The notes: generated from the sequence alone by a model not told the origin. DNA of 64,000 nt from Anthoceros angustus (GCA_010909165.1 VJWM01000068.1:310001-374000), one strand, 5' to 3'. Positions 8,424-49,821 are shown, counted from the stretch's first letter. Made by a program: numbers and translations.

Positions 8424-9990
8424 TCACAGACCCAGCACCATCCTGAGCATGCCGGCTCCGCGCCCTATCCACAGTCTGACCTGGTCTTCCCTGATGTCAT
8501 CCAAGACGTCTGCCAATGTCACACCCCTCCTTCTTGCTGTCCTGCATATGGCAGTGATTGCACGGTGGATGCAAAACAAGTCTGGAAGGAAATCCGAGAA
8601 TTGCAGGCTTGCCGTGAAGGCGTTCTCCCTCGCCACCAACAAGTCCTGCGAACGGAAGCCATGGTCAGTACACTAGACAATCAGTGCACACAACAACAAG
8701 CAGCCAGCCACCCAGCCAGCAACAGCCACCCAGCTCGTAGCTCGCACCCCGGTTAGCAACTGAATGTCTCTGAGAGGAGACACCTCAGGTGCCACATTGC
8801 GTGTGTATCCCCTGGCCTCTCGACGGTCCACCAAATTCTCCACGCCTTCTTCGTATGGTGGTGGTGGCACCAACCCTGCTGACCTCGCCTGCTCCTGAAA
8901 AACATCTGCTGGCACATGTGCTGGCATCGCTCGGCCTGCCTTCACCGGGTGCCGATTCCAGACTCTGCGATACTCTTCTACAGCAGCTTTCATAGCTGGC
9001 AAAAAGCTCTCATGCAAGGAGTGGATGTGCCAGGGATTGGTCCATCCAACTCCCCGCTGTCTTCCAAGTCCTGCATGCAGCCTGCATAATAAAATGCCCA
9101 CTTCTGCCAAAGCGAACGCCAGAAATACCGAATCCGCTGCCAAAAGCAAGCCCCAAATAGTATCTCCCAGCACAACCAGGCAACCGATTGCAACGCACAC
9201 TAACCTGCACTGGAGGCTCCCGGATGAAGCTGCTGCCTCGTGGACTTGGTCTGACTCTCAAAATGTCAGCTGCAATCAGATGATGCTCGACAGCAAAATC
9301 GGATTGTTGGAGACATTGCGGGTGTCCATATGTGCAGACAGCGTCTGCGTAAGCGGTTGTCTCCAGCTTGTTGTCTTCAACCTGAGGCCGAGTGAGAAAG
9401 TGCGTTCCCACATCGATGGCAGCATGCACCCACAGGTGATATCGGGAAAGTTTGTCGTATACTGCACCCACATACCACCAACACCCAATTAGCCTCACAC
9501 CACCGACCCTGCTGACAACCAAAACACAAGTCTAACTCACATCCTATCTCCCACATGAACATGGGCATGTTGGAGGTAGTCTGGATACGATGAATTTGAG
9601 CTCGCCGAGCCACAACACAGTCGGGTTGCAGAACACGGATTGCCTCGTCCACCTGCCGGCTGGATACTCGAATCCCCCTGATACGCAGGGCTGCTCTCAC
9701 AAAGCCCACATCCCAGCTCACTCTTGCAAATGAAATGCCCTCGACAATCAACCTACACACCTCCTCGGTTGTTCGAGGTGCGAGGCGTGCTGGCCGAACC
9801 TCATCCTGCAATGCACCGAGCCTCTACCATTAGCACCCAACTGCTTGTGCCCACCAGACGAGATTCAGCCCATCCTTACCATCTCCCGCTTTCCTCCCCT
9901 TCCGACCGCGCAGCGCCTTCGTCCCCATGCCACCAAATTTTTCTCCACGACCTGGTCCTTCAAACGAAGTGCAGGCTGCGCAAGCGGGAG
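8424..9990 (-). CDS. Spliced eukaryotic IS3/IS481-like integrase-core (DDE) gene; one frameshift; possibly domesticated or pseudogene
   Basis: Motifs: GFVRAALRIRGIRVSSRQV, YDKLSRYHLWVHAAID, DNKLETT, YGHPQCLQQSD, RIRYFWRSL, LEDSGELD, HSLHESFLP, WNRHP. GT-AG introns 9879-9806, 9540-9462 and 9204-9137 join the frames exactly. A further acceptor lies at 8646. Confidence 0.75.
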
Positions 9991-28129: not shown

Positions 28130-28600
28130 CCTCGCTGTCAACAACCATTGCCAATAATCCCACATACCAAAGTGGAGCACTTTGGAATTTGTGAAGCATG
28201 TGCACTTGGTAAAAGCCATTGCAGCCTTTTTCCCAAATATGGTTCAAGGAATACACAGATTGGGCAGAAAAACAGACTGGAGAACACCTTCTCACACTCT
28301 GAAGCGATGGTGGTGGAGAGTATACCTCCACCGAGTTTAACCAATTCTGCCCAAGACATACTGGCCGGAAGCAATGGCCCATGCAGTCTATCTTATTAAT
28401 CGCAGCATTATGCCTGCTCTCCCAAAACAAACTCCTTATGAAGTCTGGATACGCCGCAAGCTTGACCTCTCCAACCTTCGTGCTTTTGGCTCCTTGGTGT
28501 ATGCCCACGTTCCAAGATCTGTCCGAACCAAACTGGACGACAGGGCCACCAAATACCTGTCCAAGCTGAATCCGACAGCGACGACGAACAACACATCGTC
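28130..28600 (+). mobile_element. Deleted Ty1/copia integrase fragment
   Basis: CEACALGKSH, SDGGGEYTSTEF and AVYLINRS..TPYEVW..DLSNLRAFGSLVYAHVP..RTKLDDRA. Confidence 0.88.
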
Positions 28601-29214
28601 ACCGACGCTCCCAGCCAATTGCAACCAGCACCTGGCGCTCCACCTGCAGTGCTGGCCCAGCCAGATCTGGTGTTCGGCATCTTCGACTTTGACACCATTT
28701 CCTCTGCATCGTGCCTTCTACTCCTCGGGCCCCGACAACGCCTCGGCTCAAAGGGGAACACCAAGAAGCCCGGCAAGAATCCACGCCATTGGCAACTCCC
28801 TCGACGATCTCTTCCAAGCTCCAAGTATATAGGCACATCACAAGATGCGCATTCTCAAGGCGCACACAATGATTGGCGAACTGCACAAAACGGCCAACAA
28901 TCGGAGACGCTAGGCTCCGCATAAGATCGGCACCACCAAGGACCTCAAAGCAGCCCCCCTCGACTTCAAACCCGCTCCCACGACTTGAACGAGATAAGCC
29001 ACACTTGGATATACCACAAAGCTACATATACTTGCACGGACAGCAAGGCTATACAGAAAACAAGCAGCGCGGAATGTCATCGAAAACGCAGGTGGCCTGA
29101 CCACGACCAGGAGGGTCAGCCTCCGTCGGGCTCAGCTCCGTCCCAATGAGCCCCTCTGTAGTCCATATTATTGGGTCATATCTCCATGTCATGCCATTCA
29201 TTCATGGATACTCT

Positions 29215-29470: not shown

Positions 29471-32400
29471 ATCTTCGTGTCACTGCCTTCGTGTTACTCT
29501 GGAGCTTTGCATCCTGAGTGGCCTCTCAATCTTGACTTCCACTCCAGCATTTTGCCAAGTTGCCTTCTTAATTGCTTGCAAAGTATTTCCCGAGGTAGGC
29601 GGAGGCAAGCTTGGAAATGTCGGAAAGCATTAGAAGACGGATTCTTGAATGTGTCCTTACAGCATGAAGGGCATATTTCAAGCTACAAAGGTCGTCGGAA
29701 TTGAGGCCAACAATCTCCACAACCCTACGATGGCTTTGTATGTGACACCCACGATGACTTTTTGATGAAGCGGCTTGGGCTGCCCTCTTGTGGGCTAGAC
29801 TTCAAGACACAAATATCAACCTTTGAGCTAGCAAAAAAGCGATTCCATATCTCAAATATCTTGAACTTGTTTTATGGCGGAGAGAGTAGCCCTACTAGAA
29901 AAGGGCACCCTATGTTACAGTGGATGTTGCAATTTTTTGTTACACTTCCACATTGCAACATGTTTTGGAGGGTTGGTATTAAGTTTGTTAGTTCCCCTTG
30001 GTGTGCCATCTTAACACGAACTGCACTCTCTTCCCACCTCCCCTTCGGTACACCCTCTCTCACAAGCATTGTTAATAATTTCCCACCTGCCATTGTTACA
30101 GTCGTGTTGCAATTTTATGTACCACTTCCAACTTCCATCATGGTTTAATGGCTTGGTGTTAAGTTGGTCCATTCTTTCTCTTCGATCTCCCACCATCCTA
30201 ACACAATGCTTGGTCTCTCACTTCATGTACCACTTCAAAATTGCAACACTTTATGGTGGCTAGGTGTTCATGGTGTCCTTTTCTTATCCACCTTCTCACC
30301 CCATCTTAACACAATACTTGGTCTCTCTCCTCTCACCTCACCCTGCTATTTATTGCCCCCTTATCACACCCTTTTATACTCTTTCACTTCTCCTCCTCCT
30401 TCATGACTGTGAGGAGGACCTCCCCTATCACAGCCATTTTATACTCTTCCACTATTCCTCTCTCACCTTGCTTGTTACAATGACCTCTCTCCCTCTTCCT
30501 TCCTTTTACCTCCTTTGCATATACTCAATATACATATATATGTTTGTAGGCTTCAAGACATAAGTATGTGTACGCTTATATGTACACATCCATCCGTTAT
30601 ACTTCTATTATATTAGTGTATTTACATGCCTCTTTGTATACGTATATACGCACGTATATATAGGCATCAAGACTTGTTTATATAATAATATATATGTGCT
30701 AACCCTTACGTCACTCTCATACCTTATATATCTAAGTGTTTGATTTTATTGACAATTTAAATCAAATTTTTGGACACTTCAATCGTCCTCTATCCCTTGC
30801 GCCTTTGTTTCCACCGATGCAATACGAACTCCACGTGATATGGGCATATGCGGGCGTGCACCACCAACATGTGCCTCGAATCGGCGACGCGACGCCACTT
30901 GGTGACTCTTCAGACCAACACCATTGGTTTCAGGGTTCCTCCACATCTTCCTACACCTATCCAGCGACCTCTATAACCACTTTCACGGCAGAGGACCCAT
31001 GTCAATGCTAGGCTACAAAGGTGGGCAGACCAATTCCCTCTTGTTTGTTGCTAATTGACCATCACCGTCCACCCATGCACGCGACTCCATCGTCCGCAGG
31101 AAAACATCTCGACCATTTACATTCCTCCACAAACGGCCCCTACCCATAGATCGGTACCAACCATTCCTATGTCACTTGCGCCTACACCCCTTCGCCACCG
31201 TCCGACTCGACTCCTCTTGCAGCTTCAACACCGTTGTCTTTGCTTGACCCTCTTCGCAAGACCTCCTCGTTCCTCCGTGTGGTCCACCTTCGGGGCGACC
31301 ACCCACTAGCCTCAATGGCTAGCCCTTCACTCCGGCCCCATAGGCTGCCAAATCACCACTTCCACAATTCCATGGCAAACGAATAGCATTCAATCTCTCG
31401 ATCCGGGTTGCCACCCTACTCACGCTTTTGACACGGATCGTGATACGCCTTGTCGGTGGCACGCCATCACACCTCCGTGATCCCCACCATCCACGTTGCC
31501 TCCGGCATCACTTGACGGTGACGCTCCCTGCTTGGCACCTTCCTCCATCTTCCTTCTCCACCGGGTTCTGCCTTCCTTCACGACCGCCTTCACCTTCCAC
31601 CGCTTTTCCTTCCCTTCTTCCCTGCAGTCATGCACACGCATCACTTACAGCTCACGCCCCTACATAGCGAAACCTACATATCACAACCAAGCATTCCATT
31701 AACCGTCAACGACTATTTTACCACTCCAAGATTCTAAGATGTCCAATCCATGCCTTGCTGCCCACTTCAACTCATCCAGGTTGCGCCCTCCCCGTTGGAC
31801 ATACGTTTCTCGAACTCCTTTGCTCCCACCGGACCAAAGGGATTCGTCCCATGCTCGTGCTTGCAATTCTTGCCGACGCTTGCCTGGTGTTGGCCACACA
31901 CCACCATGCTTCAACAACGCCACCACGGCTTGTCGCACGCCTTTCTCCATGCCTTCGTGCTCACATTAGGCGGATGCAACCATTTTGCATCCTTCCCTTC
32001 TCCCTCCATTGCGACTTGCCGCACCTTCTTGCCCACATTGTGGTTCCTTGTCCGCGATGCACCCGCAAACCCGGCCACAATATCCTCGCCTATACTTGCA
32101 AACTCATACTCTACCTTCCTCACCGCCTTTCTCGCAAACTTCGTCGTGGCTCGACCATGGCATCATCACCCATTTTGCACACACTAGCTCCAACACACTG
32201 GTGAAGGCCTCCCTCACTCGTCCTTCCTCATCGGACGACTCTTAACATGGTAATTCTGTAAGGAGGTTAATATACGAACCCCCTTTCGGTGTTGCAGAAC
32301 CCCTTTGACGAAAATCACTCGGTATCTAAATCACGCAAAGCCATCACGCCTCCTCGACAATGGACCATTCTTGGCCCCCGACTAAGTCATGAACAACACA

Positions 32401-32559
32401 ATTGAGGCATACACACAATGATTAACAGTGTGCGCCCGGCTGGATGAAGCCATGATAGTGGAAGAGGGACGTTTTTAAATGTGCACTTCACAAAATGGCA
32501 CCGATAGACACATGGCATAATGAAGTTTATGTCAGGAATCCTAATACATTGGATCCGGT

Positions 32560-35310
32560 TACTCATGCGGGCTATTCTGGATCTCAACTGGGCCCTGAAC
32601 AGAAGCGGAATCTAAAACTACAGCTAGGTTTCGCATACGCTCCAGTTCTTCTTCACAAACTGCTATTCTCTCACCCAAAGCGTTGTCATCGTTATTAACC
32701 TCCGCTTGGACCTGTACGACGTGGGAGGTTGCCATATGGTATCCGCTTTCTGTCCTTCCTCCAACACCCGCCTGCTCGTCTTCATCCTCCTGGCACTCAA
32801 AGAAACAACTTGGGCCTTTGAACAATCCTTTTCACTTATACAAACCTCCTTTGCCCAGAACTGTGAAGGGCCTTTGCGGTGGGGCTCGAAGGTAAGCTCT
32901 TCTTCAACATCCGGGAGAACCTCGTATCCGTGGATGCGCTGGGGGATGTATCCAACACACCGTAAGTCTGCTTTGATGGCGATACAGTTTCTTCCACATA
33001 GCAAGGCTGCAAGTACCGTTGTGCCACTTCCGGAGCATGCGTCCACCACCCAGTCCCCTTCTTTTGAGAAGGTCTTGATCAATTTCATCATCAGCCCAAG
33101 AGGCCTTTGGTATGGGCATACCACCAACTTGTCATGGGACAAGTACACCTGCTTCTTTACCACATTGTCATGTCCTATGACGGACCTCCCATTGTTGAAA
33201 GTGCCATGCATGGCATTCGGCATCATCGGAGCTCGATCCTTTGAACACCCATCCTTCAAGCCCCATCCGACAGTCACATACTCCACTGTTTCAAATCCGC
33301 CCCTATCATTGCTCATGTTAGTTTTATCCCACACGAAAGACACCAGGCCACCCTTCTTACACCACTGCGCATCGATTCCGTCTTGTGTGGGCTTCCTCCA
33401 CTCCATGCATGACAATCATGCGGAAGTCTTATAGTTTTCTCAAAAGCTGAAATACTCAACATAGTGGCATCCATCCGTTTGTCCATAGGCCCAATATCAA
33501 AGCCTGGGCACATCCATGACTAACGGTGTACCTCCTCACCAAGGTAGCCCGCATCTCCAAAATATCTCGCTTCTCCACTTGGTAATGAACCTCCTTCTCA
33601 CCACGAACGAAAATGTGCAGCCCTTCATGAAGATCAGACCGCCATGTGCTCGTCTTCCAAACTCTTCCAATTATTGATCTCGAAAATGAAATTTTAAAGT
33701 CCTCCGGCATTTTACGCAAGTTGTCTATATCCTTCAATTGCCGCAAGGGCAAAACGTATAAGTGCATACAGCTGATGCATGAAACATTATGCACTAGATC
33801 TCAAAGGCATGGTGAGGCGCCGGCCGCCTCAAGCCTGAGTTCTATGGAGTGGATGAGGCGCCGGCCGCGCCTTCTAAGGCAGGTCCCCACATCACATGTG
33901 GAAGTGGCCTCCAGCCGGCGCTGCAAGAACGTTAGGGTTTGTAAGCAGAATATGAGAGAATTAGAAAACGATGGGTAGTATGGCACACCTTCCGTGAATG
34001 CCGTCTGAACCGAGCTATCATTTCGTCCGAATGCAAAGGATATTCCAGCCTAACCTCTTGAATGATGAGCAGCCCAAGTGTTTTACCATAGCCACTTGTA
34101 TAACATGAAACTTCTTCCGTAAGGTAATCTCCTCATCCATACCTTTTAGGTCGATAATTGTCAACACCTTCTGTCTACGATGAGTATCCACGACCGCACT
34201 CTCCAGGAATCCTTGAACGATTTCCACGGCTTTGCTAGCATATCCTTGACTTCACGTAACAAAGTGTCAACAACCTTAGCCTCCTCTTGTACCTTCCGCT
34301 TGCCTTTGCCTTCTTACTTGTTTTAGAACATGTTTTTCCGCTCGCAATTCTCCAGCCTCCATTTTGAAAATATTCGATCCACGTTGTCCCAAACCTTCCC
34401 TCTGCTTCGCAATGCATAAGATGTGGGTCCGATTGTCCACCTTATTCGCTTGTAAACATCGCCTTCCGACCTCCGTCGTCCTCAATCAAGCCCAATACAC
34501 GGTATAGGTTGAATTTCCAATTCATGGTCATCTGGACATCATCTCGGCAATAAGCGATTCGTCCCTCAAGTACCGACCCGCTCAATGAAGGACATCTTCT
34601 TCCTTTGTCCGACATCGATTGTGGTCTGCCGCATTCGCATTTCCGCCATCACCCATTAATACACATGAGCTTCCACATATTGGAAGCGTGTTTTCCTGGA
34701 GATATATCTCGCCAAATGTTTCATGGTGCAAAGGTATGGTTCCCACCAAGAACCCCCATAACATATTTCTTACGAACCTTTTCGGTCCAACTTGAGGTTG
34801 TCACACTCGTCGGGTCGATCATGCAAAGGAGAGGTAACACGCCTCCTCAATCCTTCCCTTCGATATTACACGAGCCAAATAATTTGCCCATGCCTCGTCC
34901 ACTCTCCTTATCTGCGCATACGGTGTAATATGGGATGCTGGTTTCAAATTCTCCACTTCACTAATACTGCTTCTGAACCACCTTCTTGGAGTAAGCCGAG
35001 TCAATTGTCAAAGTGCATCTCGATAGCATCCTCCGGCCTTTCCTCGTCTGCACGAACATGAGCAGTGGCAATGTTTTCCGGATGGTCCCCTTTCCTCCAT
35101 CTCTTCGACTTCTTCTTCCCACTACCGCCGCCACATCGCCATCGCCGTCTGGTTCACCGGCAGAGACATCCGTAGTGCTCTTCCGCTTTCCACCTCGCCC
35201 ACCACATCACCGCCTCGCCTCCTCTTCTTCGGCTCACGGGCCGGCCCCACCTCCTCCTTCTTCAACAGCGGCCAGGGCGCCCCGTCGCCTAGTCCATCTC
35301 CCCAATGGAA
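32560..35310 (-). CDS. ParB/Srx-like domain + beta-class N4C/N6A DNA methyltransferase fusion (frameshifted as assembled)
   Basis: ParB-like: YAQIRRVDEAWANYLARVI and VLGGNHT (34747-34733). MTase: motif IV-like LVMDVP(Y)GFD (33514-33506, 2-nt lesion), CPYQRPLGLMMKLIKTFSKEGDWVV, motif I DACSGSGTTVLAALLCGRNCIAI (from 33043). The C-terminus is coiled-coil-like. Confidence 0.85.
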
Positions 35311-35416
35311 ATCGACAAACCGGTTTGGGTTTAGTCATCGCCTTCCCCGTCGTGATAGTAGCCGGCCGCCATTGTCATCCGATCGACAAGTGACGGTAGG
35401 AACAAGGTCTACAAAG

Positions 35417-38400
35417 TGACGATTTGTAGAGATAATGCATTAATTAAATCGATAAAATAATTACATCATTGATAATCAAGAAAAGAACCAAAGTGTTTAT
35501 GAGACTTGGACAACTTAACTAAACCGAAAAGTCATGTCTGTTTCGCTAAAGGTCGCAACCCTAATGAAAGGGTATATATAACTTAAGCTAAGTTATATGT
35601 GTGACTAATAAGCTAACCCTAGGTTACTTAACATTATGATAACACCCTAAGTACTCATTACTTCATCACTCCCACTTGTTGAATGCATGTTAAGTACATT
35701 CCTTCCTTGTGCGGTCCCTTGTGAGCGTGAGCGTCACTTGAGCCTCCTCCTTAGCGCCATTTACGTCAGGAGCAATGGAGCGTGAGGATGAGATGCCTCG
35801 CCCGAGGTACGCTGGTATTTAACCGCAGCCACGCTTCCTGCGCCTCATTTCAAGATTCCAACTTTGGAGGAGAGCGCTTGTCGCTATGTCTTCTATCACA
35901 ACACCATCTCGATGATGCCCTCGGGGGCTTGCCATAATCGTGATCCCCTTGGTCGATTTTCAGCTAGAACACCTGCTGAGAAGCCCAAAGAACTCACATC
36001 ACTGCTAAAGGTCCCCGCCGCCTAGGCGTCCAAGAGGGAGGCCACCTGGCGGCGTAGAGGAAGGGCACGAGTGCCATCGCGATGCCACTATGGGGCTTCT
36101 TCTCGCGGTGCCCCACGAACTAACAAGCAAGTGATTGCTGATGCGAGGAGGTTCGACGAGGGTGAATATGCCTACTCGGGATGAGGCGATTCCACCTTGC
36201 CATTTTCCTTCCCCGCCATAAGAGAGTATGATGAAGAGAGTTGTGTGCCTGAAACATAAAACACCCGGATCGCCACTATGGTATCGATGTCGGGTGACTG
36301 ACATACTTCGTCGCAGGAGGTCACCATGTGGAATACCCGCACACGCAGCCGACTTCTCATGAAGCGTTGATTTCCGCCTGCTTGCTTTAGCCCCTTCGCT
36401 TATTGTGCTCCACTACTTTGAGAAATTCTAACATCACCTGCAGATCTTGTAGGGACCGACATCCGGCTCAGGGAGGAGGAACGTCTCGAACCTGAAGAAC
36501 GAATATCTTATCAGGAAAGGAAGAGACGTAACAGCCCTCTCGAAGGAGAAAGCTTCTCCACACCTGAAGAGCCGGATTCTGAGAATCCTGACGAGGAAAA
36601 TAACAACATTGATGATTCTGATGAAGCGAGCTTCAACTGGGATTAGGGGCTAGGCCTTTTTCTTTTGCTTTCAGACTGCTTTGAGGAAGTCTTGCGACCT
36701 CCCGAGTCCCAGACTCTTTACATGTTTGTGGTGTAACTCTCGGCCTAGAGCCTTAGTCAGATATCCGCAGGGTTGTCATTGTTGGTATGTAGTCCAAGTA
36801 TATTTTCCTGCCACCGCTTCTCTAATGTAGTGATACTCGACTTCCACATGCTTTGTACGTGAGTGAAAGAGGATTCTTTGCTAGAGCCATGGAGCCTTGG
36901 TTGTCTCAGATAGATAGGGCTGTGGTAGGTGAATTCCCATCTCCTAAAAATTAACTTACACCACACTATCTCTTTTGTTGCACTGCGAACTCTATACTCG
37001 GCCTCAGATTGATGGCCACCGTAGGTTGCTTCTTGGATGACCAACATATAGGTCCATGACAAAGGAGACCACATATCCAAACCGACTTTCTCGTGTCAAT
37101 GTCTCCAGCATAGTCAGAGTCTGTAAAAGTCTCTAAGTCTAGAGTCTTTCCTTCCTGGTGCTCATACCTTAAGCCTACATCTGATGTTCCTTTCAGATAG
37201 CGAAACGCCCGTTTCAAACTCTGCCAATGTTCATGGCCTGGATGTTCAAGAAATTGGGATAAGGCGCTGGTTGAAAATGCAACGTCTGGCCTCGTAGTGT
37301 TTGAAGCATAGATAAGTTTACCTACCCCTTTTCTCAGATGGTACATTTGCCATAGCATCCTTTTCAAATTACTGTGGACACATTGACTTACTCAACTTCA
37401 ATCCACTAGGTAAGGGTGTTGATGCCGGTTTGGCATCTTTAAGGCCCATCTGCTCCATACCTCATAAGGTATCTCGGCCGTGTCAAGGTAATAATTCTTC
37501 TATCTCTATCCCTTTGAATGTGAACACCAAGACACTTTCTAGAGGTCCGAGATTTGTCATCTCAAATTTCGTGTTAGCGCAGTTGAGCTTGGTGATGTAT
37601 GCTCCACTATTGCAAAGCATAATCAAGTCGCCCACATAGATCGCAAGGTAACAGACTACGTTGTCTCGATCCAGAACGCATGTGCCGCCATCCGCTGCAC
37701 TTTACAAAACCTAGTTCACGCAGCTCCTCATCCAGGACTGCGTTCCATTCCATAGCAGACTGCTTGAGCCCATACAGAGTTTTGATTAGCTTGAGGACAT
37801 AGTCCTCTTTGCCTTTTACTTCATAACCTGGAGGCTGCTGCATATATATCTCTGTATCTAGCTTCCCATGTAGAAATGTTGTTTTCACATCAAACATATC
37901 TAACTCATAGTCTTTGTGGGCTGCAACAGCACATAGGATACGAAAAGTTGCCATCTTGACAACTGGAGCAAATGTTTCCAAGTAGTCTAGGCCTGGCACT
38001 TGGGAAAATCCTCGAGCTACGAGTCTTGCTTTATACCTATCAAAGGTACCATCAGCTTTCACTTTTAGTTTGAAAACCCATTTACATGAGACCATTTTGC
38101 GGCCTGGAGGTAACTTGGCTAGCTCCCAAGTCCCGCTTTTGATCAAGGATCTGTGACTATCGTATGGCCTTTTTCCATTCAAGAAGATCGTCTACTAAGT
38201 GCCTCCTCATATGAGTGTGGCTCGATGGGGTCCAAAGAAAAGAGTTGACTTGCTGCCCTAAAGTCATGTGACCGATAGTAACTGAGGATGTCGCTCACTG
38301 GGTAGCGCTCAGTTGAGCAGCAGTGGGTCTTGCTCACCGAGGTGCGAGTTTCAAGATCCGATCGTTCAAGATCCGCATCGCCGCATCGCTTCCTCCATAT

Positions 38401-41400
38401 CTAAGTCCACATAAAAGGTAGAGGATCTGAGGATGGGGCTGCATTTGATCAACGACATCCTCGAAATCTTGTTCTAAATTACGACAACGCGTGCTAGGTC
38501 GGTCGCACCGTGGATCCTCTTGTTCCCCACCGCAGGAGCAACATCCTCGTGAAGATCCTCAAAATGCGAGACATCTTGTTCAAGATGTTCCCAATCATCT
38601 TCGGGCGTAATCGCCGAAGCTCCCACGCCGTAAACGGTTTTCATCAAAGGTAACGCCCCTGGAGTAGATGACGTGATTAGTAGGCACATCATACAACTTG
38701 TATGCCTTGATGCCTTCAGTGTAACCTAACATCAGCAACTTTTGTGCTTTGTTGAACAGTTTCTTGCGCTTCTCCCTGGAGATGAAGGCATAGGCTACAC
38801 AACCAAAAGTCCTCAAATGCAAGATCTTGGGCTTATGTCCATAGAAGGCTTCATATGGAGTCATCCCTGCGACAAGACAGGCACTGTTCCTTAGGTAAAC
38901 AGAGGTTGTAAGGGCTTCGGCCCAATAGGACAGAGGGAGGTGAGCATGGTTCAGCAAAGAAGATGTCATCTCCTGCAAAGTGAGGTTCATGTGCTCAGCC
39001 ACCCCGTTCTGTTGAGGTGTATAGACCACTGTTAACTGCCTGCCAATTCCTTCATCTGTGCAGAAGGCCTGGAATTCTTGTGAGGTAAATTCCCCACCAT
39101 TATCCGAACGCAAGGTCTTGAGCTGCTTCCCAGTCCAGCGTTCTGAGAACTTCAGATAAGCTTTGAAGTGTGAAAAGCATTCACTTTTAGCTTTAAGGAT
39201 ATAAGCACTGACAAAACGTGTCGTGTCATCTGTGAAGGTCAGAAAATATTTCCCGCCGCCGAGGGAAGTCTTTGACAAGGGGCCACACAAGTCTGTGTGC
39301 ACTAACTCCAGGACTTCTGAAGCCCTGTGAGGAGCCTTGTTTCTAAAGGCTGCTTGATGGCGTTTTGCAAGAACACAGGGTTCACATAAAGGTAAAGGCA
39401 CTAATTTGCCAATAGGACCATCAGCATAGAGGTCACTAGCAGCTAATTTCTGCAACTTGCTGCTGTGTGGGTGACCTAATCGAGCATGCCACAACTTAGA
39501 CTTCGCTATCACAGTGTGAGGTGGGAGTCCTCATGTGTTAGATGGGACTGTACTACTCCACCCTTAGTGTGAAGACGAAACAGGTCATGTTCAGAAGACC
39601 CGTAGGCTAGAACTCTGTTAGAATTAAAGGCATCTATGACCTTACACTTTGTAGCTGTGAACAGAATGTGACTGTTATTGTCTATGTTTAAACGCCTAAC
39701 AGAGATTAGATTGCGTGTCATCTCAGGTACAAAATAAACATCTAAGAGAGACCTGACAGCCTGGATGGTACTGGTGAATAGTCCCCATCCCTGGAGAGAC
39801 AAGAGACCTATTATCGCCAAGGTAGACAAACCGGTCCTTGATCGACTGAAGTCAAATGCGTTTCTATCAAAACACATGTGAGCAGTGGCACCTGTGTCTA
39901 AGTACCACTCTGTGAATTGCCTAGCATTTGTCTTTGCTGACAAGGACTGGATTAGTATACTCCCCTGTCCCAACCATGAGGGCTGATGGCGATGGCTGCT
40001 TCTTAACCACAACATTGGTTTCAGCGTTTCCCTCCTTTCGAGGTAAGCCTCGCTAGCTTTTCCTGCATTCACGCTCCCGGACTGTGGATTTTGCACGATT
40101 GCAAGTCCCCGACTTCTTACTTTTCTTGTTTGCAACCGGCCGAGTGGCCTCCTTGCGAGCCGCCACCTCGGACGAACCAGATCCACCGCCTGAGTATGGT
40201 CTTGCACCACCGCCCACTGCTTGGATGTAGCGCCGCGACGCCGCTTGTCCTCCTCTGGTCGCCTCCTCTTCCAGGAGGGACCCAACAAGTTCTGCAAATG
40301 TTAATTCTGGTACTTTGAGGCTGGCTGATTTCGCCAGTTTGGCCACCTGTGATTGGGATGCATGAATTGATGTCACAAAGTGTGACCATGACTGAGTCAA
40401 TGATAGCAACAGGTACAATGTCAGCATTTCATCCTTGATGGTTTCCTTGGTAGCATTTTCCAGTTTAGAGACCAAGGTTCTGAAAGTCATTATATGTTTT
40501 TCCACAGATTCTCCTTCACGCATTTTACATTCTTTGAAGGTTGTTGAGACGGTGATTTCTTTGAGTTCTTTCTCGCGTCTGACTCCTCCAGCGATCCGAT
40601 CAGTTAGCCTCACAACCAGCTTGCCTCATCATGTCTGCGTGAGTCCACTTCTAATGAAATACATGGAAGATTCATTTCGAGTTCTCGCTTCCTTTTGTGC
40701 AAGTTTCACTCTCGTGCATCTAAACCTTGTGTGGTTTTCCGAGTTTTACGTTGAAGTGCGCCTTTCATGCGCATGACCCAAATATCATCGACGACCATCA
40801 AATCTATCCTTTTCTTTGAACCCTTCCCCACCTACGGATGAGGAGCTGATTCCCATTGTAAGGGCTTATAAAGGGTTTAAAGCTACTATCTATTGCCTCG
40901 AGGCATCTACGGAGGTGAGCAAGTATGTTAACAGGTCTAATTACTTCATGTAAGCTAGATGCCTGCTGTGCCTCCTTTTCTGCAATCCTTTCTTAATGTG
41001 AACCTATTGTAAGTGTAGGTTGCACATGAAGGACAAGAGTTGGGATCATCAAACCGCTGATTGCTATTAGTACAGTTGATTGATCTAACTGCAAAAGTGC
41101 GAAATTCAGGGTTTTTCAACAATTCTGGCTTTAACAACACATGGATTTTATAATCCAGGTGGAACAGCTGCTCCCTTAGATCCTGTAAATCCACACTTAC
41201 GCCAGCAACACTCTTATTCAGGTTTACATAACGCCTATCTACAAATAGGGCGTGAGATTCAATTGAAATAATCGGAAGCTGTGGTGTGTGGTGGTGAGGA
41301 AACCATTAGGGTTTCCATGTACATCAGGTGAGAGCCTAGGACGCAACTCCAGAGGGTTGGCTTCCGGAACTTGCTCACGGGGACCAACTAACAAATGTTG

Positions 41401-42235
41401 AAAGTCTGGGTATAGGGTGGAAACCAGAAAATTGTAAGCCTCACGCAGCCGTGTGCTGTGTGCAGGCCTGTCTTGATTTCTGTGTGTCCACTCCTCAGTT
41501 TGCTGGTGAATGCGCTCAACAATGTTTCTGTCGTTAGGTTGTCCCCTGAGTGGTCGATTGCGTTGGTTGACTCGCTCAGCAGGTCGAGGCTACCAGATTT
41601 GGCCCTCGTTGTGTGCCATTTTTAATGGCTTGTATTCTGGCTGTTAGAATGCTAAATTTATGCATTCTGATTGCTATTTATCAATTTACAAAAGCTATTT
41701 GCACTATCTAGCGTGTGTTCTAGTGAAGTTCTATCGAATTGCTATAGGAGCAATCAATAGAACTACATTAGAATGCAACTACTAGATTTGCAAAACAGCA
41801 ATTTGTAAACAAGCAATTATAAAGAAAACAACCAGAAATTTAAGTTCTTGATTTTATTTTGGGTTTCATTTCAAGAAAGCATTCTTAAACATAAAACAAC
41901 CAAAATGCATGTTTGTGCATATCCCGAAATGCACATTTGATGTGCATTCTTTAGAATAAAGCGCATCATCATGCTCGATACCATGACGATTTATAGAGAT
42001 AATGCAGATTAATTAAATCAGATAAAATAATTACATCATTGATAATCAAGAAAAGAACCAAAGTGTTTATGAGACTTGGACAACTTAACTAAAGCGAAAA
42101 GTCATGTATTCGCTAAAGGTCGCAACCCTAATGAAAGGGTATATATAACTTAAGCTAAGTTATATGTGTGACTAATAAGCTAACCCTAGGTTACTTAACA
42201 TTATGATAACACCCTAAGTACTCATTACTTCATCA
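35417..42235 (-). mobile_element. Complete Ty1/copia LTR retrotransposon
   Basis: 252-bp TG..CA LTRs (35417-35668, 41984-42235) and a perfect 5-bp TSD CAAAG. PBS tggtatcgagc (41983-41973); PPT next to the left LTR. ORFs cover gag (40053-40613), protease WYLDTGATAHM, integrase (38595-39512), RT (37607-38182) and RNase H (36757-37367). Confidence 0.98.
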
Positions 42236-44099
42236 CAAAGTTCAGATGTCCTCTGATCCCTATCCTCGCCTTGGTCGCCGACTTCTCCATCCGAATGACC
42301 CAAAGATATCTGGATCGGCCATCATCCTCGGATGGTCCCAGCCACTATCTCGCATCCTCGATGCTGTGGCTATCTCGCATCATCCTCATTCCTGGCAATG
42401 CTTCTCGCTTCCCTCATAGACAATACGCTACTGTAAGCAACAAGATCCACACCTTTCCACACAATACCGATAAGAGCTCTTCCTACTGGGTGGCTAAACA
42501 AAGAAAACATGATGCAAATCGAGGAGAAAGCACATCGAAGATGACAAATCGAAAACAAAATTCACATGTCCATGGCATATCTCGGTTACAATGGCTTGAT
42601 TGCCTCAAATACCTCGACAAGCTCAGAGGACCACATTTCTTAGCTCGAAACCCAAGGACGCCGAGCTCATACGCCCTATACATTTGAGGGTCTTGAATCA
42701 TCACAAACTCCCGAGGCCTTGTTGTGCAAAACAACGTGAACACCGGTTCTTCTCGTCCATGTCCGTGGTCGCCCATACTACCCATCCACTCGCTTTGGTT
42801 AGGCAATGCTCCCTGTAACCCATGATCCACAATTTCAATAGTGGAGTCCGAACGCTCATCCTCCGCTCGCATCCCGTGGTCACCATCCAATCTTTCTCAA
42901 GCAGATTGACAGGATCCATCCGAGCATCTGACGCCGAATGATCGCCTCCTCGTAGGTGAAGGCGAAGGAATCGGCACAGTACGGGCTTTGTGACTTCTCC
43001 ACTCCAGCTCCCCTCTTTCCACCGCCAGCCGGCCTTCGCAGACGCTGCCAGCGGATTTCGCTTGCCCGATGCATGCCCACCCTTGGCTTGCTCACCACCT
43101 CCAGCATCACGCGATGGTCGCCGCCTCCCAAGTCCTCCGCACTAGCCGCTACTCTCCGGATTTCTTCGCTTGGGAGGAGGTCACCGGCACCGTGATCCGC
43201 CAAATCCTTCTTGCTCCGCCGTCTTGCCATCGCTCACCACTGCCCGCCTGAATTGAGCTACACGAAAACAAAGTTGCATCACTCACAAATTGGGCTTGAA
43301 TGGAAATTGTGGAGTTCTCGCCGCGGTGGATGCCTTGTGCACCGCTGACACGGAACACGCTCTTTGCAAAGGCGCACACCGTAGGTCCCTCCTTCACGCA
43401 CGCCACACCGATGGAGGCCTCTCATGGACCGTGGAGCGTTACGGCGCTTGAACAGTTGCAAGTGGAACACCGCTACCAAAAGGAACTCTTAACCCCTGGA
43501 CGATTAGGGTTACCGCTCACCACGTTAACCAAAGTTAGAAACCCCGATGTCGTGTGAAAGGTGGTAGTTAAGTGGACCTTATTCTCCTATGCATGTATTT
43601 ATGACATCGTGACTTATCCATCGATTGCGGTGTTATTCTTATCCCGCGGACCGCGATATCCGCCTCATTGGATTTCCTCGCTATGTGCAATGAAGTCGCG
43701 TCAGAGGCGTGGTACTAAGTCACGCCGACGCAAACCACTTACCAACCATTTCGCTTGCAAGGAGTCTACCAAGGTGACTTGTCGACCGACTACCACGGCA
43801 ATGTTGCGCGACACACATGCATTTATATGGAGGACGTGAGTGGAAAGTGCACCATGTGTCCGTTCATCATTTGTGCTATCACCAGCTGCTGTTAACCCGG
43901 CAAGTTCATATTTGCACGCAGGCATCGGCTTATGTAGAAGAACCCTCCCGATACTTGAGGCCTGCAGTGGACTCCCAGAAAAGGGCGAGGAGGCTTGCTC
44001 TTTTAAACCCACCGCCACCTCTGCCTCGCCATCCTCCGCAAGGTTAGTGTGTTATGGGGCTTGAGTGAAGAGTCCGCTATAGCATATTGTGGGAAGTCA

Positions 44100-47000
44100 G
44101 TAGTGGATGTCACTTGTGCAGGGGAAAGACGCCGACGGAATTGTCTTCGCCAAGTATGCCGCATGGTGTTCTGGCTGACGCCAAGAAATCGAACTTGTAT
44201 GCCATAGACGGCAGCCTCCATGAGGAGAGTTGGGGTTGAAGGACTGATGTTCGCATGATTGCCCCGTGGCTTGTTCATGGCGATGGGTATGGGTAGGCAA
44301 AACATACCGGTCCCGAGGAGCTAGACGGCCGTCCGATAGAGGTCCCATCGAGCATTTACTTCCAATCACCTCCGGAGGATGATGTGCAAAGATCGCTTTC
44401 ACCAAACCTTTGAGCGAGACATTGCGGGACTCTCTGCGTTATGTCGAAGACGGGCAGCGTGTCGTTGAGGAAGAGTGAAGTGGACATTGTGACCGACTAC
44501 GGAAACCTTGTTGCAATCGGATGTGCTTGCGTAAATTGACGAAGAAAGATTTCGTGAGCGGTATAGATTCATAAGAATGTGCATAAGAGCAGAGACATTC
44601 CTTCGCCTCTAGTCCATCGCGACGAGGGACCAATGATAAAGGAAAAGTTGTCACTCATGTTATGGGGAGTGTTCGTCGAGATGTTGTCTCAAGGCTTTAA
44701 GGGTTTATTGTGTGGGACACATCGGTATGAGGAGTTGAAGGCTAGAGTTCTTGAACTCACCGTGGATGGTTTCGAACAAACCCATACGCAGCTCCGCATG
44801 CGCTAGGGGCCATAGCTTGATGGACAAGACTTTTATGTACATGGTGAGAGGCTCCCAAATGTGGAGGTTTTCAATCTTCCCGACACGCATACAAAATTAG
44901 AAATATGGTTGCTATACAAACGAGAGTGCGAAGGTCGTGGCTCGATATGTCACCTACGCGTGGTTCTTAAAGCTATGGAAATGCAACTACAGAGTGAAGA
45001 TCCCAAAGTCAAACCGGTTCTCGACATGCTCGCTGCAGGATTGAAGACAACTATACGGAACTCAACACGGAAGGTCGATCAAGGTGGGCACTCTTGTTCC
45101 TCCGCATGTCAGTCCTTTCTAACCTTTTTGTGTGAACCACTGTCGTCGTCGACTGGTCCTAGGTGTCTGCTGCATCGCTTGGAGGTTTGGGCGCCATCGG
45201 ATGGAGGTTTGGTTAGCGGTCGTGGCGCCCCTTATATCACAAGAGTGGCGCCGTGCCCTCTTCTCGCTTCACAAGAGGGCGTCCGACTGCGGATGGTTAG
45301 TTGCCTGCACTACTCCCTCCCCTCCTCCTCCTCCTCCTCCTTGGGTGGGGGCCACGGCCGCCCACCTCAACTAGTGGTGGGCCCCAAGACCACCCTTGTT
45401 AGTAGCAGAGGGGTGCGGCCGCCGCGCCTATGTCCTGCTACGGAAACCCTTGGGTGGAACTCCATAAGTACCGACCTTGGCTCCCACCTACACCAAAATC
45501 CGCCCTCATGTGAAGTATATGTGTAATGATAAATGAGAGGGCATGACTAGAGTGTTTGCAAAGAATGGATTTTGAAACCGACCGTGAAGTTCTTGTTTTG
45601 TAACAATGAAATATCAGTCGCTACGGACATCGTGCGCCCGCACGAGGAACGACGAAGATGGCCAAACACAGGAGCAAAAGCGTAGATCCGCATAAGTACA
45701 TATTACATGCCTATAGATGGGATGGACCAAGAAAAACGAGGTACCACACTTTTGAGGTGGTCAAGAACTGGATGAGGAGTCCCGATCTCGCCCACGTAGT
45801 TGGGTGTATGATTCACAACTACACGTATAAAACGAGGGCCTTCTTGCATTACGCAAATTTGAGAAATGACGCCAATTTTGACTATCATACAGGTGATGTG
45901 ATACACAACTACGAGGAGTATTACAAGGTTTTATACTTGCAATTGGACAACACTTGTCGGAGAACAAGAATCAACTTCTTTTGCATATCCGAACATGTTA
46001 GTGGATATGGGAACTTTTGAGAAAGTAAAGGTGGGGTTTCTTCTCGTTGGACATACTCATGATCAAATTGACCAAATGTTTTCATGTTTTCAAAGAGCTT
46101 GAAACATGTGGAAGCTCATACTCTCCCGCATTGGCGGCAATTTTGAAAGAGGCGTACACTCCAACACGAGGTGAAGGTATTAACGGAGGTTCAGACTTCC
46201 GCTCCTATGTTTGGTCACGACAAGGGGATGGACGCCAAGCATACGGAGTCATGGTGCGAAATTGAACAACTGTCATTCCAAAGACCAGCTCAAAATTACA
46301 AGAGAAGAAAACTCGACCGTGGCCTTGTGATGCCATTAGAAGCAAACAATATTCGACATCGCCACAATGGGAAGCGGAAGCCGGTTTGGAGTTTTGAAGT
46401 TTGTCCCATCCAACGTAACCGACTACCGACATCCCTTCGCGTGATAAGAAAGGCACATCGTCGTGGTTATCCCCAACCGAGGGTGTGGCTCACTTGAAGG
46501 AGGGCCTCTCGGCTTAGACCATATGTCACCGCAGAGGAATATAAATGGTGGGAAGAATTTTGGGTGGACCAAGAGGAGATCGTTATTGTGGAGAATAATA
46601 TAGGGCTCGCACTCAAGACGCATGGAAGTGGTTTTCATGACCAAGTGGAAAAAACCGAGGTTCTTCACGTGCTCGATGAGGCGTTGCTAGAGGAGGCTTT
46701 ACTCGTGACCTTCCCCAACGGATATGTACCTTGGTGCATATCAAACCGTTGTTAGACAAGAACAAGAAACGCATTGAATGGTGACATTTGAAATAAGGAA
46801 AGACATGTTCATTGCGCCCCCGCACCACCGGCTGCATGAACAGCCGCTTTTGGATTGGCAGGTCATTGATGTTCACTTAGATGCACCGGATCCTCACTTT
46901 GTCGCTTCATTGGTACATGACCGAGCACATGATGCGTATGAAGGAAGGTATGTTGAAGAATTTATAATCCGACATGAAGGGACCCAGAAATCGGGAAAAA

Positions 47001-47120
47001 GGAGGAAAGCTAATTTGCACAAAACGCATAAAAGGTTTTTGTGAACAAAACTGATCATATATTATGGTTTCAACTTGAATGCTCGCAAACATTTATATCT
47101 GTGGACAAGAAGGCGATCGA
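44100..47120 (+). CDS. Sola-like DDE transposase (frameshifted; ~540-bp interruption at ~45073-45617)
   Basis: Motifs across frames: CCNRMCLRKL..RERYRF; LPDTHTKLEIWLLY; FLKLWKCNYRVKIPKSNRFSTC; IDGMDQEKTR; HVVGCMIH; LYLQLDNTCRENKN; FLLVGHTHDQIDQMFS; EEYKWWEEF; C-terminal FWIG.VIDV..HWY..YEGRY. The 5' boundary is approximate. Confidence 0.8.
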
Positions 47121-48330
47121 CTAAAATTAAATGAATTGCGGCTTCATACGCCAAAGTAGCCAAAGTGGCCCAAAGATAGTGAAGATAGTGGTGGTGATGC
47201 AGCTCATGCGATGATGCCAATTCGTAAGACGATCGGAGTTCATGAACATATGCCAAGATGTTTTGTCTTATGTGGACACGTTTTTCTTCCCTTCCTCTCA
47301 ATAAGTTTCAATAGATTCTCCAAATCATATTGTCCGTGGAAGGCTATTTTTCCCAGCCCGCACTTAACGAAAACCGTTGTCTTCCGCCAAGTTGTCATTA
47401 TTATGCGATTACAAAGACCAGTGGAAACCAGCCTTCCTAAGCATAGCGACAAATCCATACGACGAGACATCGATGTAAGATGGTGTTCATGTGCAAGACG
47501 ATTGCGAAGCGTTGCTAGAGGAGGCTTTACTCGGGGACCTTCCCCAGCAGGATATGTACCTTGGTGCATATCAAACCGTTGTTAGACAAGAACAAGCTGC
47601 GGTTGAATGGTGACATTTGAAATAAGGAAAGACATGTTCATTCGGTCCACACTGCAAACGAGCAGGCCGTTTTGGATTGGCGAGGTCATTGATGTTCACT
47701 TAGATGCACGGATCCTCACTTTGTCGTTCATTGGTACATGGTGAGCACACGGTCGTATGAAGGAAGGTATGTTGAAGAATTTATAATCCGACATGAAGGG
47801 ACCGGTGGCATGAAATCGGGAAAAGGAGGAAAGCTAATTTGCACAAAACGCATAAAAGGTTTTTGTGAACAAAGCGATGATCATATATTATGGTTTCAAC
47901 TTGAATGCTCGCAAACATTTATATCTTTGTGGACAAGAAGGCGATCGGACTAAAATTAAATGAATTGCGGCTTCATCTGACCAATAATAAAGTGGCCCAA
48001 AGATAGTGAAGATAGTGGTGGTGATGCGAGCCTTGCGATGATATTGTAATTGAGGAGTTCATGAACATCTGTGCCAAGATGTTTTGTCTTATGTGGACAC
48101 GTTTTTCTTCCCTTCCTCTCAATAAGTTTCAATAGATTCTCCAAATTACATTGTTATTGGTGGAAGGCTATTTTTCCCAGCCCGCATAACGACCGTTGTC
48201 TTCCGCCAAGTTGTCATTATTATGCGATTACAAAGACCAGCGTGGAAACCAGCCTTCCTAAGCATAGCGACAAATCCATACGAGACATCGGCGGAAGATG
48301 GTGTTCATGTGCAAGACGCATTGCGAGCGT
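46680..48330. repeat. Tandem duplication of ~825 bp (transposase C-terminus + end of convergent ORF)
   Basis: cgttgctagaggaggctttactcg occurs at ~46682 and ~47511, and colinear blocks repeat with a period of ~820-830. Confidence 0.93.
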
Positions 48331-49821
48331 TAACCAAACCGTAACGTTGTTTGTATGTCCATAGGCCACCTCACCGACTGCCCTGTATGACTTCTTTGCA
48401 TGTTGCTCACCCCAAAGTGGGGAACACTATTTCTCCGCGTGTACAATGGGGGCCACAATTACACACGGTCAAAGGGTGTCCATGGACGAGGAGTGAAGAG
48501 GCGCCGGTCGGCCGGCGCCGCTGTCTAGATTGTGTTTTCCGAAAAGGGGCGACATTGACCCTCGACCATTGTACTAACGGCGTAGAGTTGTACTTAATGG
48601 AAAAGGACCCGCACCATGTTTTTCGAGTTGCCGGGTTTTGCTCATCGGTCTTCATCATCACTGCACAAAACGGTCGTCCCATCCGGTCCGAAATGGAGCC
48701 AAATGGATGTATGAGGGGTTATCAAAACCCTTTGCCTCCTACATCGATACACGAAATTTGTGTGCACGTGATGAACACCCTATTTTTCCGAGGCATTTTG
48801 GACCACACGATTCAAAACCCTAAATGGAGACCCATTGGAAACCCTCATTGCGAATAAAAGGCGTAAAACCCCATGGTGCATATTAACCTCCTCATGTAAT
48901 AATTACCTTGTTCTTCATCCGCCTCCCTCATTCTCTACCCACCCTCCATCGTGACAACCGCCTCAAACCATGTACACTCTACGCCCATGTAGCCTCAGAC
49001 AACACTGCTATGACATCGCTCAATGGCTTACCGGCCAGTGCTCCAATTCTCCACCTCATGTGGTGGCAATGTAGTCGGCATGTGTTCCTCGACCTCGGAT
49101 CCGCCATCTCCACATCTTCCTCCTCGCCTCCCGCCTCCCCATCCTCTCATTGCGGTGTCCTCCTCCTCACCGCCCTCCTCACCATCAGCATGCATGCGCC
49201 TTGGCCCTCCTCCGCAACCGCGCCACTGCCACACTGGGCCTCCAATCCCACCATCACAGGAGTTTCCTCCCTCCAAAGGCTCCCTCCGCCACGTTGTTGG
49301 GGTTGTCCGCCGCCACAGCGTAAGGTCCACAAACGTATGCCATCTCTCGGCACCCACATGTGGTCACCTCTTGTGCACCACCACCATGTTTCCCTGTTGG
49401 ACACACCAAGCTCCAGACTCAGGCCAATGTCCTCGCTCCTCCCGGATGTCGCCTCGGCATCCCTCCTCGACGCCTTGAATCTCTCCCAGAAAACAAATGG
49501 CTCCCACCTGTGGAGACACCTGCCCACTCACTGTCACGAGCATCGCCCGCCTCGCAGACTCCACTCCTGCATGAAGGTGCTCCCAAGCACCTCCACCGCC
49601 CGCCCCGCCCACGCCATGAGCATCCACCCTCCACTTGGAATCGGCTTTTCCACGACCGCGCCCACCTCACTTTGCCGCTTCCACCATCCGCCGCCCGTGC
49701 TTCCATCCACCTGCCAGTTGCCGCACTGCCAAGTCCCTTTGTGGACCATTTTCCGGCCATTCTCTCCTCTCGGCTGGCGCAAACGGCCGATGGGCCCCCA
49801 CCTCCTCCTTCCAAGCGGGCC

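Follow-up and report, generated by a model that had tools for sequence, protein, structure and literature searches.

In this study, we analysed a window of 64,000 nucleotides of genomic DNA from Anthoceros angustus (GCA_010909165.1, VJWM01000068.1:310001-374000; positions are counted from its first letter) and conclude that positions 32244-48912 very probably represent one old, inactivated copy of a Sola1-family cut-and-paste transposon. It carries two divergent genes, one for a DDD transposase and the other for a protein that combines a ParB-like domain with a DNA methyltransferase domain. This reading is carried by ends that were fixed independently through an empty site, by remnants of both genes between these ends and by recurrence of the gene pair in an element of Chara braunii (locus L005, GCA_003427395.1), in a JGI metagenome contig (L002) and in the published element Sola1-1_Ec32 from Ectocarpus. 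An original prediction made from the sequence alone had proposed a bounded Sola-type transposon with terminal inverted repeats (TIRs), genes on opposite strands and a nested copia element. This structural reading was upheld; neither the decay of the genes nor a tandem duplication at 46664-48331 had been noticed. Because both genes are broken by in-frame stops and frameshift, and neither retains the intact reading frame of an autonomous element, the copy in the window cannot work.

Ends, empty site and build of the element

The features found at the two termini are as follows:

32240-32243, no strand: left target-site duplication, TCTT in the 4-bp reading or its last three bases, CTT, in the 3-bp reading
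32244-32273, plus strand: left TIR, starting AACATGG, its end fixed by a contig break at 32243; AACA is common to the Chara and metagenome relatives
32276-32303, plus strand: left subterminal repeats, two copies of GAACCCC
48725-48872, plus strand: right subterminal repeats, AAACCC four times, sharing the strand of the left repeats
48880-48912, minus strand: right TIR, its reverse complement starting AACAAGG
48913-48915, no strand: right target-site duplication, CTT, or TCTT if the T at 48912 is counted with it

From 32244, the left end reads AACATGGTAATT, a short variable stretch and AGGAGGTTAATAT. Read inward from 48912 as the reverse complement, the right end gives AACAAGGTAATT, a variable stretch and again AGGAGGTTAATAT. 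The two blocks are identical in 11 of 12 and in 13 of 13 positions, with a small indel between them, which bears out both the positions and the degree of identity given in the original prediction. Since chance alone could produce one inverted 13-mer match in 17 kb, the ends were checked independently against a public DNA run from the same or a very close organism, which was mapped onto positions 30500-35400. Two contigs tracked the left flank to exactly 32243 and continued beyond this point into a 30-nt consensus that was foreign to 30500-35400. Nowhere in the window did this consensus match better than in the right flank from 48916, with agreement in 27 of 31 columns. The contigs read ...GACGACTCTT|CATCC..., and the junction of 32243 with 48916 is a paralogous empty site, of the sequence that the original prediction had anticipated for an allele without the insertion. 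With a summed contig depth of 100-950 in the same run, the flank is a repeat of high copy number, and other copies of it without insertion therefore exist. The interior of the element was covered by many short contigs with 90-99% identity, and the element family is therefore multi-copy in that organism. Insertion is thus documented by an empty site as well as by multiple copies, and the terminal repeats together with the contigs establish 32244 and 48912 as the true ends.

These results dispose of the idea that the gene remnants came together by chance among nested repeats and that the TIRs are coincidental. By our estimate, an exact inverted 13-mer match is expected about twice in a stretch of 17 kb, but the empty-site contigs define both ends independently and the TIRs lie exactly at these ends. 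With the ends so fixed, the probability of an 11/12 inverted match in the terminal 12 bases is about 2e-6. The architecture moreover recurs in L002 and Chara. A chance assembly is refuted by the empty-site contigs, and its likelihood is practically nil.

From left to right, the element consists of the left TIR, the two GAACCCC copies, the methyltransferase gene on the minus strand, the nested copia element, decayed intergenic sequence, the transposase gene on the plus strand with an internal tandem duplication, the four AAACCC copies and the right TIR. Without the copia element it measures 9,845 bp, in line with the predicted length of about 9.8 kb. When the 0.85-kb tandem duplication is removed as well, an original element of about 9 kb results, a size close to that of the relatives (8.9 kb for L002 and 11.9 kb for the Chara element).

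AACCC occurs six times in the 400 terminal bases as compared to 1.16 times per kb window-wide, an enrichment of about 13-fold. The repeats (AACCC/AAACCC, two left and four right) are directly oriented at both ends and not inverted as symmetric binding sites would be. An 11-mer from the inner TIR block, TATTAACCTCC, has a third copy at 32693-32703, about 450 bp inside the left end in the 3' region of the methyltransferase gene. It is oriented like the right TIR, and about 0.004 chance matches are expected in a 9-kb element; its presence may be coincidental or may reflect binding of the transposase at an internal site. The Chara element has subterminal repeats of its own, TTCGTGAAAACTGGAC, and carries TTCGTGAAAA[A/C]TGGAC twice at its left end.

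Transposase, target-site duplication and assignment to Sola1

On the plus strand, the window contains the following remains of a transposase gene:

44479-47741, plus strand: Sola1/DUF7869 transposase pseudogene, remnants colinear with profile positions 41-659 of 757
45610-46099, plus strand: catalytic core with WDG, LQLDNTC and VGHTHDQIDQMFSCFQRA, which a stop follows; the reading frame shifts between 45969 and 45983

The profile was built from 14 family members. The colinear pieces, together with a weak Pfam match of the open reading frame (ORF) at 45658-46020 to DUF7869, confirm that a plus-strand transposase gene lies inside the ends, as had been predicted. Residues 23-178 of the DUF7869 protein from L002 match the window at 45655-46099. 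Proteins with DUF7869 are common in Chara, Cymbomonas, bivalves, echinoderms, corals and amphioxus; a literature search for DUF7869 returned no paper. A short run of CCT/AGG trinucleotides is present at 45321-45341, in the decayed 5' part of the gene.

Sola1-1_Ec32 from Ectocarpus provides a curated transposase for comparison. This element has a length of 21.5 kb, 282-bp TIRs, AACCG-CGGTT termini and 4-bp target-site duplications, and its authors placed the transposase in Sola1 by best blastp match to Repbase Sola1-1_PPa (Genome Biol 2025, PMC12477816). On the opposite strand it encodes a 1104-aa protein with ParB-like and N4C/N6A DNA methyltransferase domains, and earlier reports from green and red algae are cited in the same paper (PMC12477816). 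For the third catalytic motif, 15 of 18 residues match between VGHTHDQIDQMFSCFQRA in the window and VGHTHIQIDQIFSCFAKA in Sola1-1_Ec32. The second motif reads LQLDNTC in the window versus VQVDNTVAENKN, the first WDG versus MDGANQS, and VGHTHDQIDQMFSCF in the window corresponds to VGHTHIQIDQIFSCF. At the level of motifs, the window transposase therefore has the DDD core of a Sola1-type enzyme. The termini likewise follow the pattern AAC...GTT, with AACATGG and AACAAGG in the window, AACATGC in Chara, AACAC in the metagenome element and AACCG-CGGTT in Sola1-1_Ec32. Because its catalytic motifs match those of the curated transposase, we provisionally file the element under Sola1.

Taken together, the window element resembles Sola1-1_Ec32 in its near-identical catalytic motifs, its AAC...GTT termini and its opposite-strand ParB-methyltransferase gene, the transposases being compared by short motifs and the accessory proteins likened by description. 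It differs in its size of about 9 kb (without the copia element and the duplication), in TIRs of about 30 bp and in family proteins of about 670-790 aa. In addition, the host is a plant and the copy in the window is dead.

CTT is found directly outside both element ends, a claim of the original prediction that both the sequence and the empty site bear out. In the empty site TCTT directly precedes CATCC, and the sequence across the right junction is ...CCTTGTT CTT CATCC. A duplication of TCTT, also suggested in the original prediction, is possible only if the TTT run of the right junction has lost one T or if the element stops one base earlier on the right. We favour this 4-bp reading because the Chara relative and Sola1-1_Ec32 have 4-bp duplications, although a single old copy cannot settle the point. 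The CTT on both sides of symmetric AACA...TGTT ends would also suit an element from a superfamily with 3-bp duplications, the likeness to Sola1 being limited to a shared DDD core. The metagenome element fits such a view in that no clean 4-bp duplication was found at its ends, where GATAT is present on both sides and the left copy is parted from the terminus by GG. However, a nearly identical terminus (AACATG) occurs in the Chara relative together with a perfect 4-bp duplication, GCTA, and the Ectocarpus element combines AAC...GTT termini and 4-bp duplications with a near-identical catalytic motif. Loss of one T in the right-junction TTT run would reconcile the window copy with TCTT. An origin outside Sola1 is hence improbable, and we retain the assignment of the element to Sola1.

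The ParB-like methyltransferase gene and its recurrence

The second gene of the element lies on the minus strand and comprises the following remnants:

32663-34846, minus strand: ParB-like/DNA amino-methyltransferase accessory pseudogene, remnants colinear with family profile positions 115 to 691 (profile and tblastn)
34691-34846, minus strand: ParB-like core remnant, ...LPLLCMIDP...YVMGVLGGNHTFAP, ending in GGNHTFAP, then a stop; profile E 4e-4
34400-34176, minus strand: linker remnant with two in-frame stops
33497-33514, minus strand: catalytic motif IV remnant, DVPRL followed by a stop; the family has D-x-P-Y-G
32663-33415, minus strand: C-terminal half of the methyltransferase, a 250-aa ORF with a PYQRP motif and the S-adenosylmethionine (SAM)-binding motif I, VVDACSGSGTT

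The tblastn queries for the ParB-like core were the family members P0095, P0013, P0012 and P0073. The gene is a pseudogene: in-frame stops interrupt its ParB-like core, its linker and the region of motif IV, and the C-terminal half is open. A minus-strand methyltransferase gene near the left TIR had been predicted correctly, but its stop codon lies about 420 bp and not about 300 bp inside the left end. The remnants (34846-32663) and the plus-strand transposase face each other head-to-head, the arrangement also seen in L002 and L005, and like Sola1-1_Ec32 the element thus has a ParB-like and N6_N4 methyltransferase gene on the opposite strand within its TIRs.

The ORF at 32663-33415 matched the C-terminal half of the Pfam model N6_N4_Mtase (PF01555, E 1.2e-12), and its best protein match was Gb_37443 from Ginkgo biloba (43% identity). 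An exhaustive search of 1.8 billion representatives returned 24 proteins at E <1e-10, with Ginkgo Gb_37443 in first place, followed by several Chara braunii proteins, Logan contigs and a 789-aa JGI metagenome protein. An alignment of eight long family members gave the motif plan. The N-terminal region carries a GGGHSREAR-like box and is followed by a helical linker. In the methyltransferase domain, motif I is located C-terminal to motif IV, the order characteristic of beta-class enzymes. The PYQKP motif and motif I (D..SGSGT) are invariant across the Chara, Ginkgo, metagenome and Logan members. Motif IV reads DFPYG, DLPYG, DAPYG, DIPHG (Ginkgo) or DMPQD, as compared to (D/N/S)PP(Y/F/W) in the canonical form. 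Family members are 20-45% identical overall, and conservation of motif I, PYQKP and the D, P and Y positions of motif IV at this distance argues that the methyltransferase domain is under selection in the family.

When the family profile was compared with the PDB, beta-class N6-adenine enzymes scored best, led by the DpnA-like 5hek (1e-13) and extending through M.RsrI, MboIIA and CcrM down to 3e-8, whereas N4-cytosine enzymes scored far lower. With these bacterial enzymes (5hek, M.RsrI, M.MboIIA and CcrM) the family shares the N6_N4_Mtase domain, the position of motif IV before motif I, PxQKP and SGSGT. It differs from them in that the first proline of motif IV is replaced, in the fusion to a ParB-like domain and in being encoded by a eukaryotic transposon.

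The variant motif IV could mean that the accessory protein is a non-catalytic pseudoenzyme that binds SAM or DNA and serves as a regulator or targeting factor of the transposon. The D-x-P-Y/H/Q form is found across the family in place of (D/N/S)PP(Y/F/W), with DIPH in Ginkgo. However, motif I and PYQKP are invariant among the same distant members, motif IV retains its Asp, its second Pro and, for the most part, its Tyr, and the profile matches enzymes known to be active (DpnA, M.RsrI, MboIIA and CcrM). The variant is no proof of inactivity, as the fold and the other motifs fit. We consider a pseudoenzyme possible but doubtful, and continue to describe the domain as a putative methyltransferase.

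The label 'ParB-like' derives from the fold. The GGGHSREAR motif resembles the GxxRxxA nucleotide-binding box, and profile searches of the N-terminal domain against the PDB returned no ParB. Residues 95-330 of P0012, the 789-aa metagenome protein, were modelled with AlphaFold from a 16-sequence alignment (mean pLDDT 82.8), and the top 50 Foldseek matches of this model in the PDB were almost all ParB, Noc, KorB, PadC or sulfiredoxin structures, with E down to 2.5e-4 and TM scores of 0.33-0.47. The predicted fold of this intact relative supports the label for the family; the window has a remnant only.

Two relatives demonstrate the complete arrangement. The metagenome element L002 is 8.9 kb long and has a transposase on the minus strand head-to-head with the uninterrupted 789-aa ParB-like methyltransferase on the plus strand, inside 28-nt TIRs that start with AACAC (in the regions 1-30 and 8860-8915). 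It encodes a 580-aa DUF7869 protein and a 385-aa upstream ORF. A motif of about 18 nt, GACCGATAGCGATATACG, is repeated in direct and inverted orientation in a cluster just upstream of its methyltransferase gene, and additional copies are found close to the start of the transposase and in the gap that separates its two ORFs (2254-2373, 3613-3642 and 5676-5941). The ParB-like domain or the transposase might bind at these repeats. In Chara braunii, L005 is a complete element of 11,945 bp with a perfect 16-nt TIR starting AACATGCACTTCGTGA and the same head-to-head pair, and its first six bases (AACATG) are those of the left end in the window. The window element shares with both relatives the head-to-head pair, the AACA termini, a size in the range of 8.9-11.9 kb and the D-x-P-Y-G motif IV of the family. 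In contrast to the window copy, the genes of L002 and L005 are largely open, and protein identity with the window copy is 30-43% over the methyltransferase half. Only hypothetical or DUF7869 annotations were found for their proteins.

The original prediction had regarded the methyltransferase as cargo of the element, and it could indeed be a host gene or a horizontally acquired bacterial gene that was captured by this element in the manner of Pack-type cargo. Its domains are typical of prokaryotes, and many methyltransferase copies in Chara are without a nearby transposase. Yet the same pair is found within TIRs in Chara braunii, the metagenome contig, the window plant and Ectocarpus, and the methyltransferases are homologous over their full length (45% identity between L002 and Chara over residues 29-761). 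Capture by this single element is therefore very improbable. Because the pair recurs inside TIRs in Chara, the metagenome contig and the published Ectocarpus element, the methyltransferase is by these comparisons a conserved accessory gene of a Sola1 lineage and not incidental cargo, even if linkage is not universal.

Among the other related loci, no transposase was present within 10 kb of the methyltransferase in L001, L003 and L004, and in L006 a transposase is located about 8 kb downstream on the same strand. Such unpaired loci may be fragments, non-autonomous derivatives or neighbouring copies. Scans of the Chara loci L001 and L006 for TIRs gave weak candidates only, with 3 mismatches. In the 49.5-kb Chara locus L004, the gene model annotated for the 1825-aa protein P0024 extends over about 30 kb and runs together at least two separate ParB-methyltransferase copies, one at 10.0-12.8 kb and another at 35.7-38.5 kb. 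This gene model looks like a fusion of transposon copies, and a third, fragmented methyltransferase copy is located at 44.4-46.3 kb.

Several observations weigh against our overall interpretation. The Sola1 call was made by motif-level comparison with one curated transposase and by Pfam DUF7869, not with Repbase Sola1 profiles. The literal duplication is 3 bp (CTT) and Sola1 makes 4 bp, so that TCTT requires the loss of one T. With D-x-P-Y in place of (D/N/S)PP(Y/F/W), catalysis is not assured. By sequence, no ParB model of Pfam matched the family up to E 10, the only match being a weak one to DUF6551 (E 0.005, Ginkgo). Four of six related loci are without a head-to-head transposase. Finally, the search for RNA evidence was negative; a single candidate RNA run gave no match to the stretch, which does not show silence.

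Proposed mode of action, known systems and later insertions

We propose that the Sola1 copy inserted into a high-copy repeat of the plant genome and that it was later modified by insertion of the copia element into its intergenic region and by the internal tandem duplication of 850 bp. The family design comprises two divergent genes between AAC...GTT TIRs. One codes for a DDD transposase (DUF7869); the accessory protein encoded by the other joins a putative DNA-binding domain of ParB/sulfiredoxin fold, through a helical linker, to a beta-class SAM-dependent DNA amino-methyltransferase domain. In intact relatives, the transposase would cut and paste the element. The ParB-like domain of intact copies may tether the methyltransferase to element DNA, with the subterminal or intergenic repeats as candidate binding sites. 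The enzyme would then mark the element DNA, and N6-methyladenine (6mA) is a more likely product than N4-methylcytosine (4mC) because N6-adenine enzymes come closest to the family among solved structures. Possible effects of such a mark are control over transposase expression, control over when the element is excised, or protection of the element. We infer self-methylation for intact copies; the window copy is incapable of any of these steps.

A stronger version of this proposal states that intact streptophyte copies (in Chara, the window plant and perhaps Ginkgo) encode an active ParB-guided enzyme that writes 6mA or 4mC on the repeats of the element and thereby times transposition or escapes host silencing, comparable to the gating of IS10/Tn10 by Dam methylation in bacteria. 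At present we regard this as unlikely; if true, a transposon-encoded epigenetic self-marking system would be at work in the plant lineage.

Related ideas exist for other systems. For Sola1-1_Ec32, the authors proposed that the accessory protein binds and modifies its own transposon (PMC12477816). In red algae, PAG3 of Bostrychia is a ParB-domain accessory gene of giant Plavaka/EnSpm transposons, and repeat arrays near the accessory gene have been proposed as its binding sites (bioRxiv 10.1101/2025.02.11.637652). There, however, the ParB domain is fused to a 2-oxoglutarate (2OG)-dependent oxygenase, an N6-adenine methylase with a SET domain is encoded separately by PAG2, and Plavaka/EnSpm is a transposon superfamily other than Sola1. 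MpDN4MT1a and MpDN4MT1b of Marchantia are sperm 4mC methyltransferases with a TSPPY motif (bioRxiv 10.1101/2021.02.12.428880). They resemble the window family as bacterial-type DNA amino-methyltransferases in a seed-free plant, but they are host genes, their TSPPY motif is typical of N4C enzymes and no ParB domain is mentioned for them. By motif, the window family has D-x-P-Y instead of TSPPY, and its nearest solved relatives are N6-adenine enzymes. A link to 4mC in antheridia and sperm, as raised in the original prediction, thus finds no support.

The novelty of a transposon carrying a methyltransferase had also been overstated, since Ectocarpus is already known to have the two-gene design (published in 2025) and green and red algae had given hints of it before. 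New are the read-based empty site for the window copy, the bounded Chara element with its 4-bp duplication and AACATG terminus, and the match to the Ectocarpus transposase motifs. The window adds the presence of the same Sola1 lineage in a plant genome, where it is multi-copy and its ends are verified by an empty site, the AACATG termini and two-gene layout common to the window element and Chara braunii, and the non-canonical D-x-P-Y catalytic motif throughout the lineage. The entry of bacterial-type amino-methyltransferases into eukaryotes, and their spread there, could be explained by transposons that bring a DNA-modifying enzyme of their own; such elements could also show how mobile DNA marks itself. 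As the window copy is a fossil, its value lies in annotation and comparison and not in function.

Two later changes enlarged the element:

35412-42240 (element 35417-42235), minus strand: Ty1/copia retrotransposon with a 5-bp duplication, CAAAG, on both sides, between the two divergent genes
46664-48331 (46664-47513 and 47486-48331), plus strand: internal tandem duplication of about 850 bp, 96% identical outside gaps, over the 3' part of the transposase gene

The copia element carries gag, protease-region, integrase and reverse transcriptase domains on the minus strand and has long terminal repeats (LTRs) of 253 bp that are identical in 247 of 256 columns. A search with its integrase returned no close match from a named organism, the best match being a Logan contig at 73%. 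Pfam searches of the ORFs of the whole element returned only the C-terminus of the methyltransferase, the weak DUF7869 match and these copia domains. The two unidentified ORF regions of the original prediction gave no Pfam match. Decayed intergenic sequence best explains the first (42.2-44.5 kb), and duplication of the 3' part of the transposase the second (46.7-48.3 kb).

The insertion target (30500-32243 and 48916 to about 50000) is a very high-copy, C-rich repeat. Just upstream of it, a copia-type integrase SH3-like domain is located at 28374-28832 on the plus strand, and the target may therefore be part of an LTR retrotransposon.

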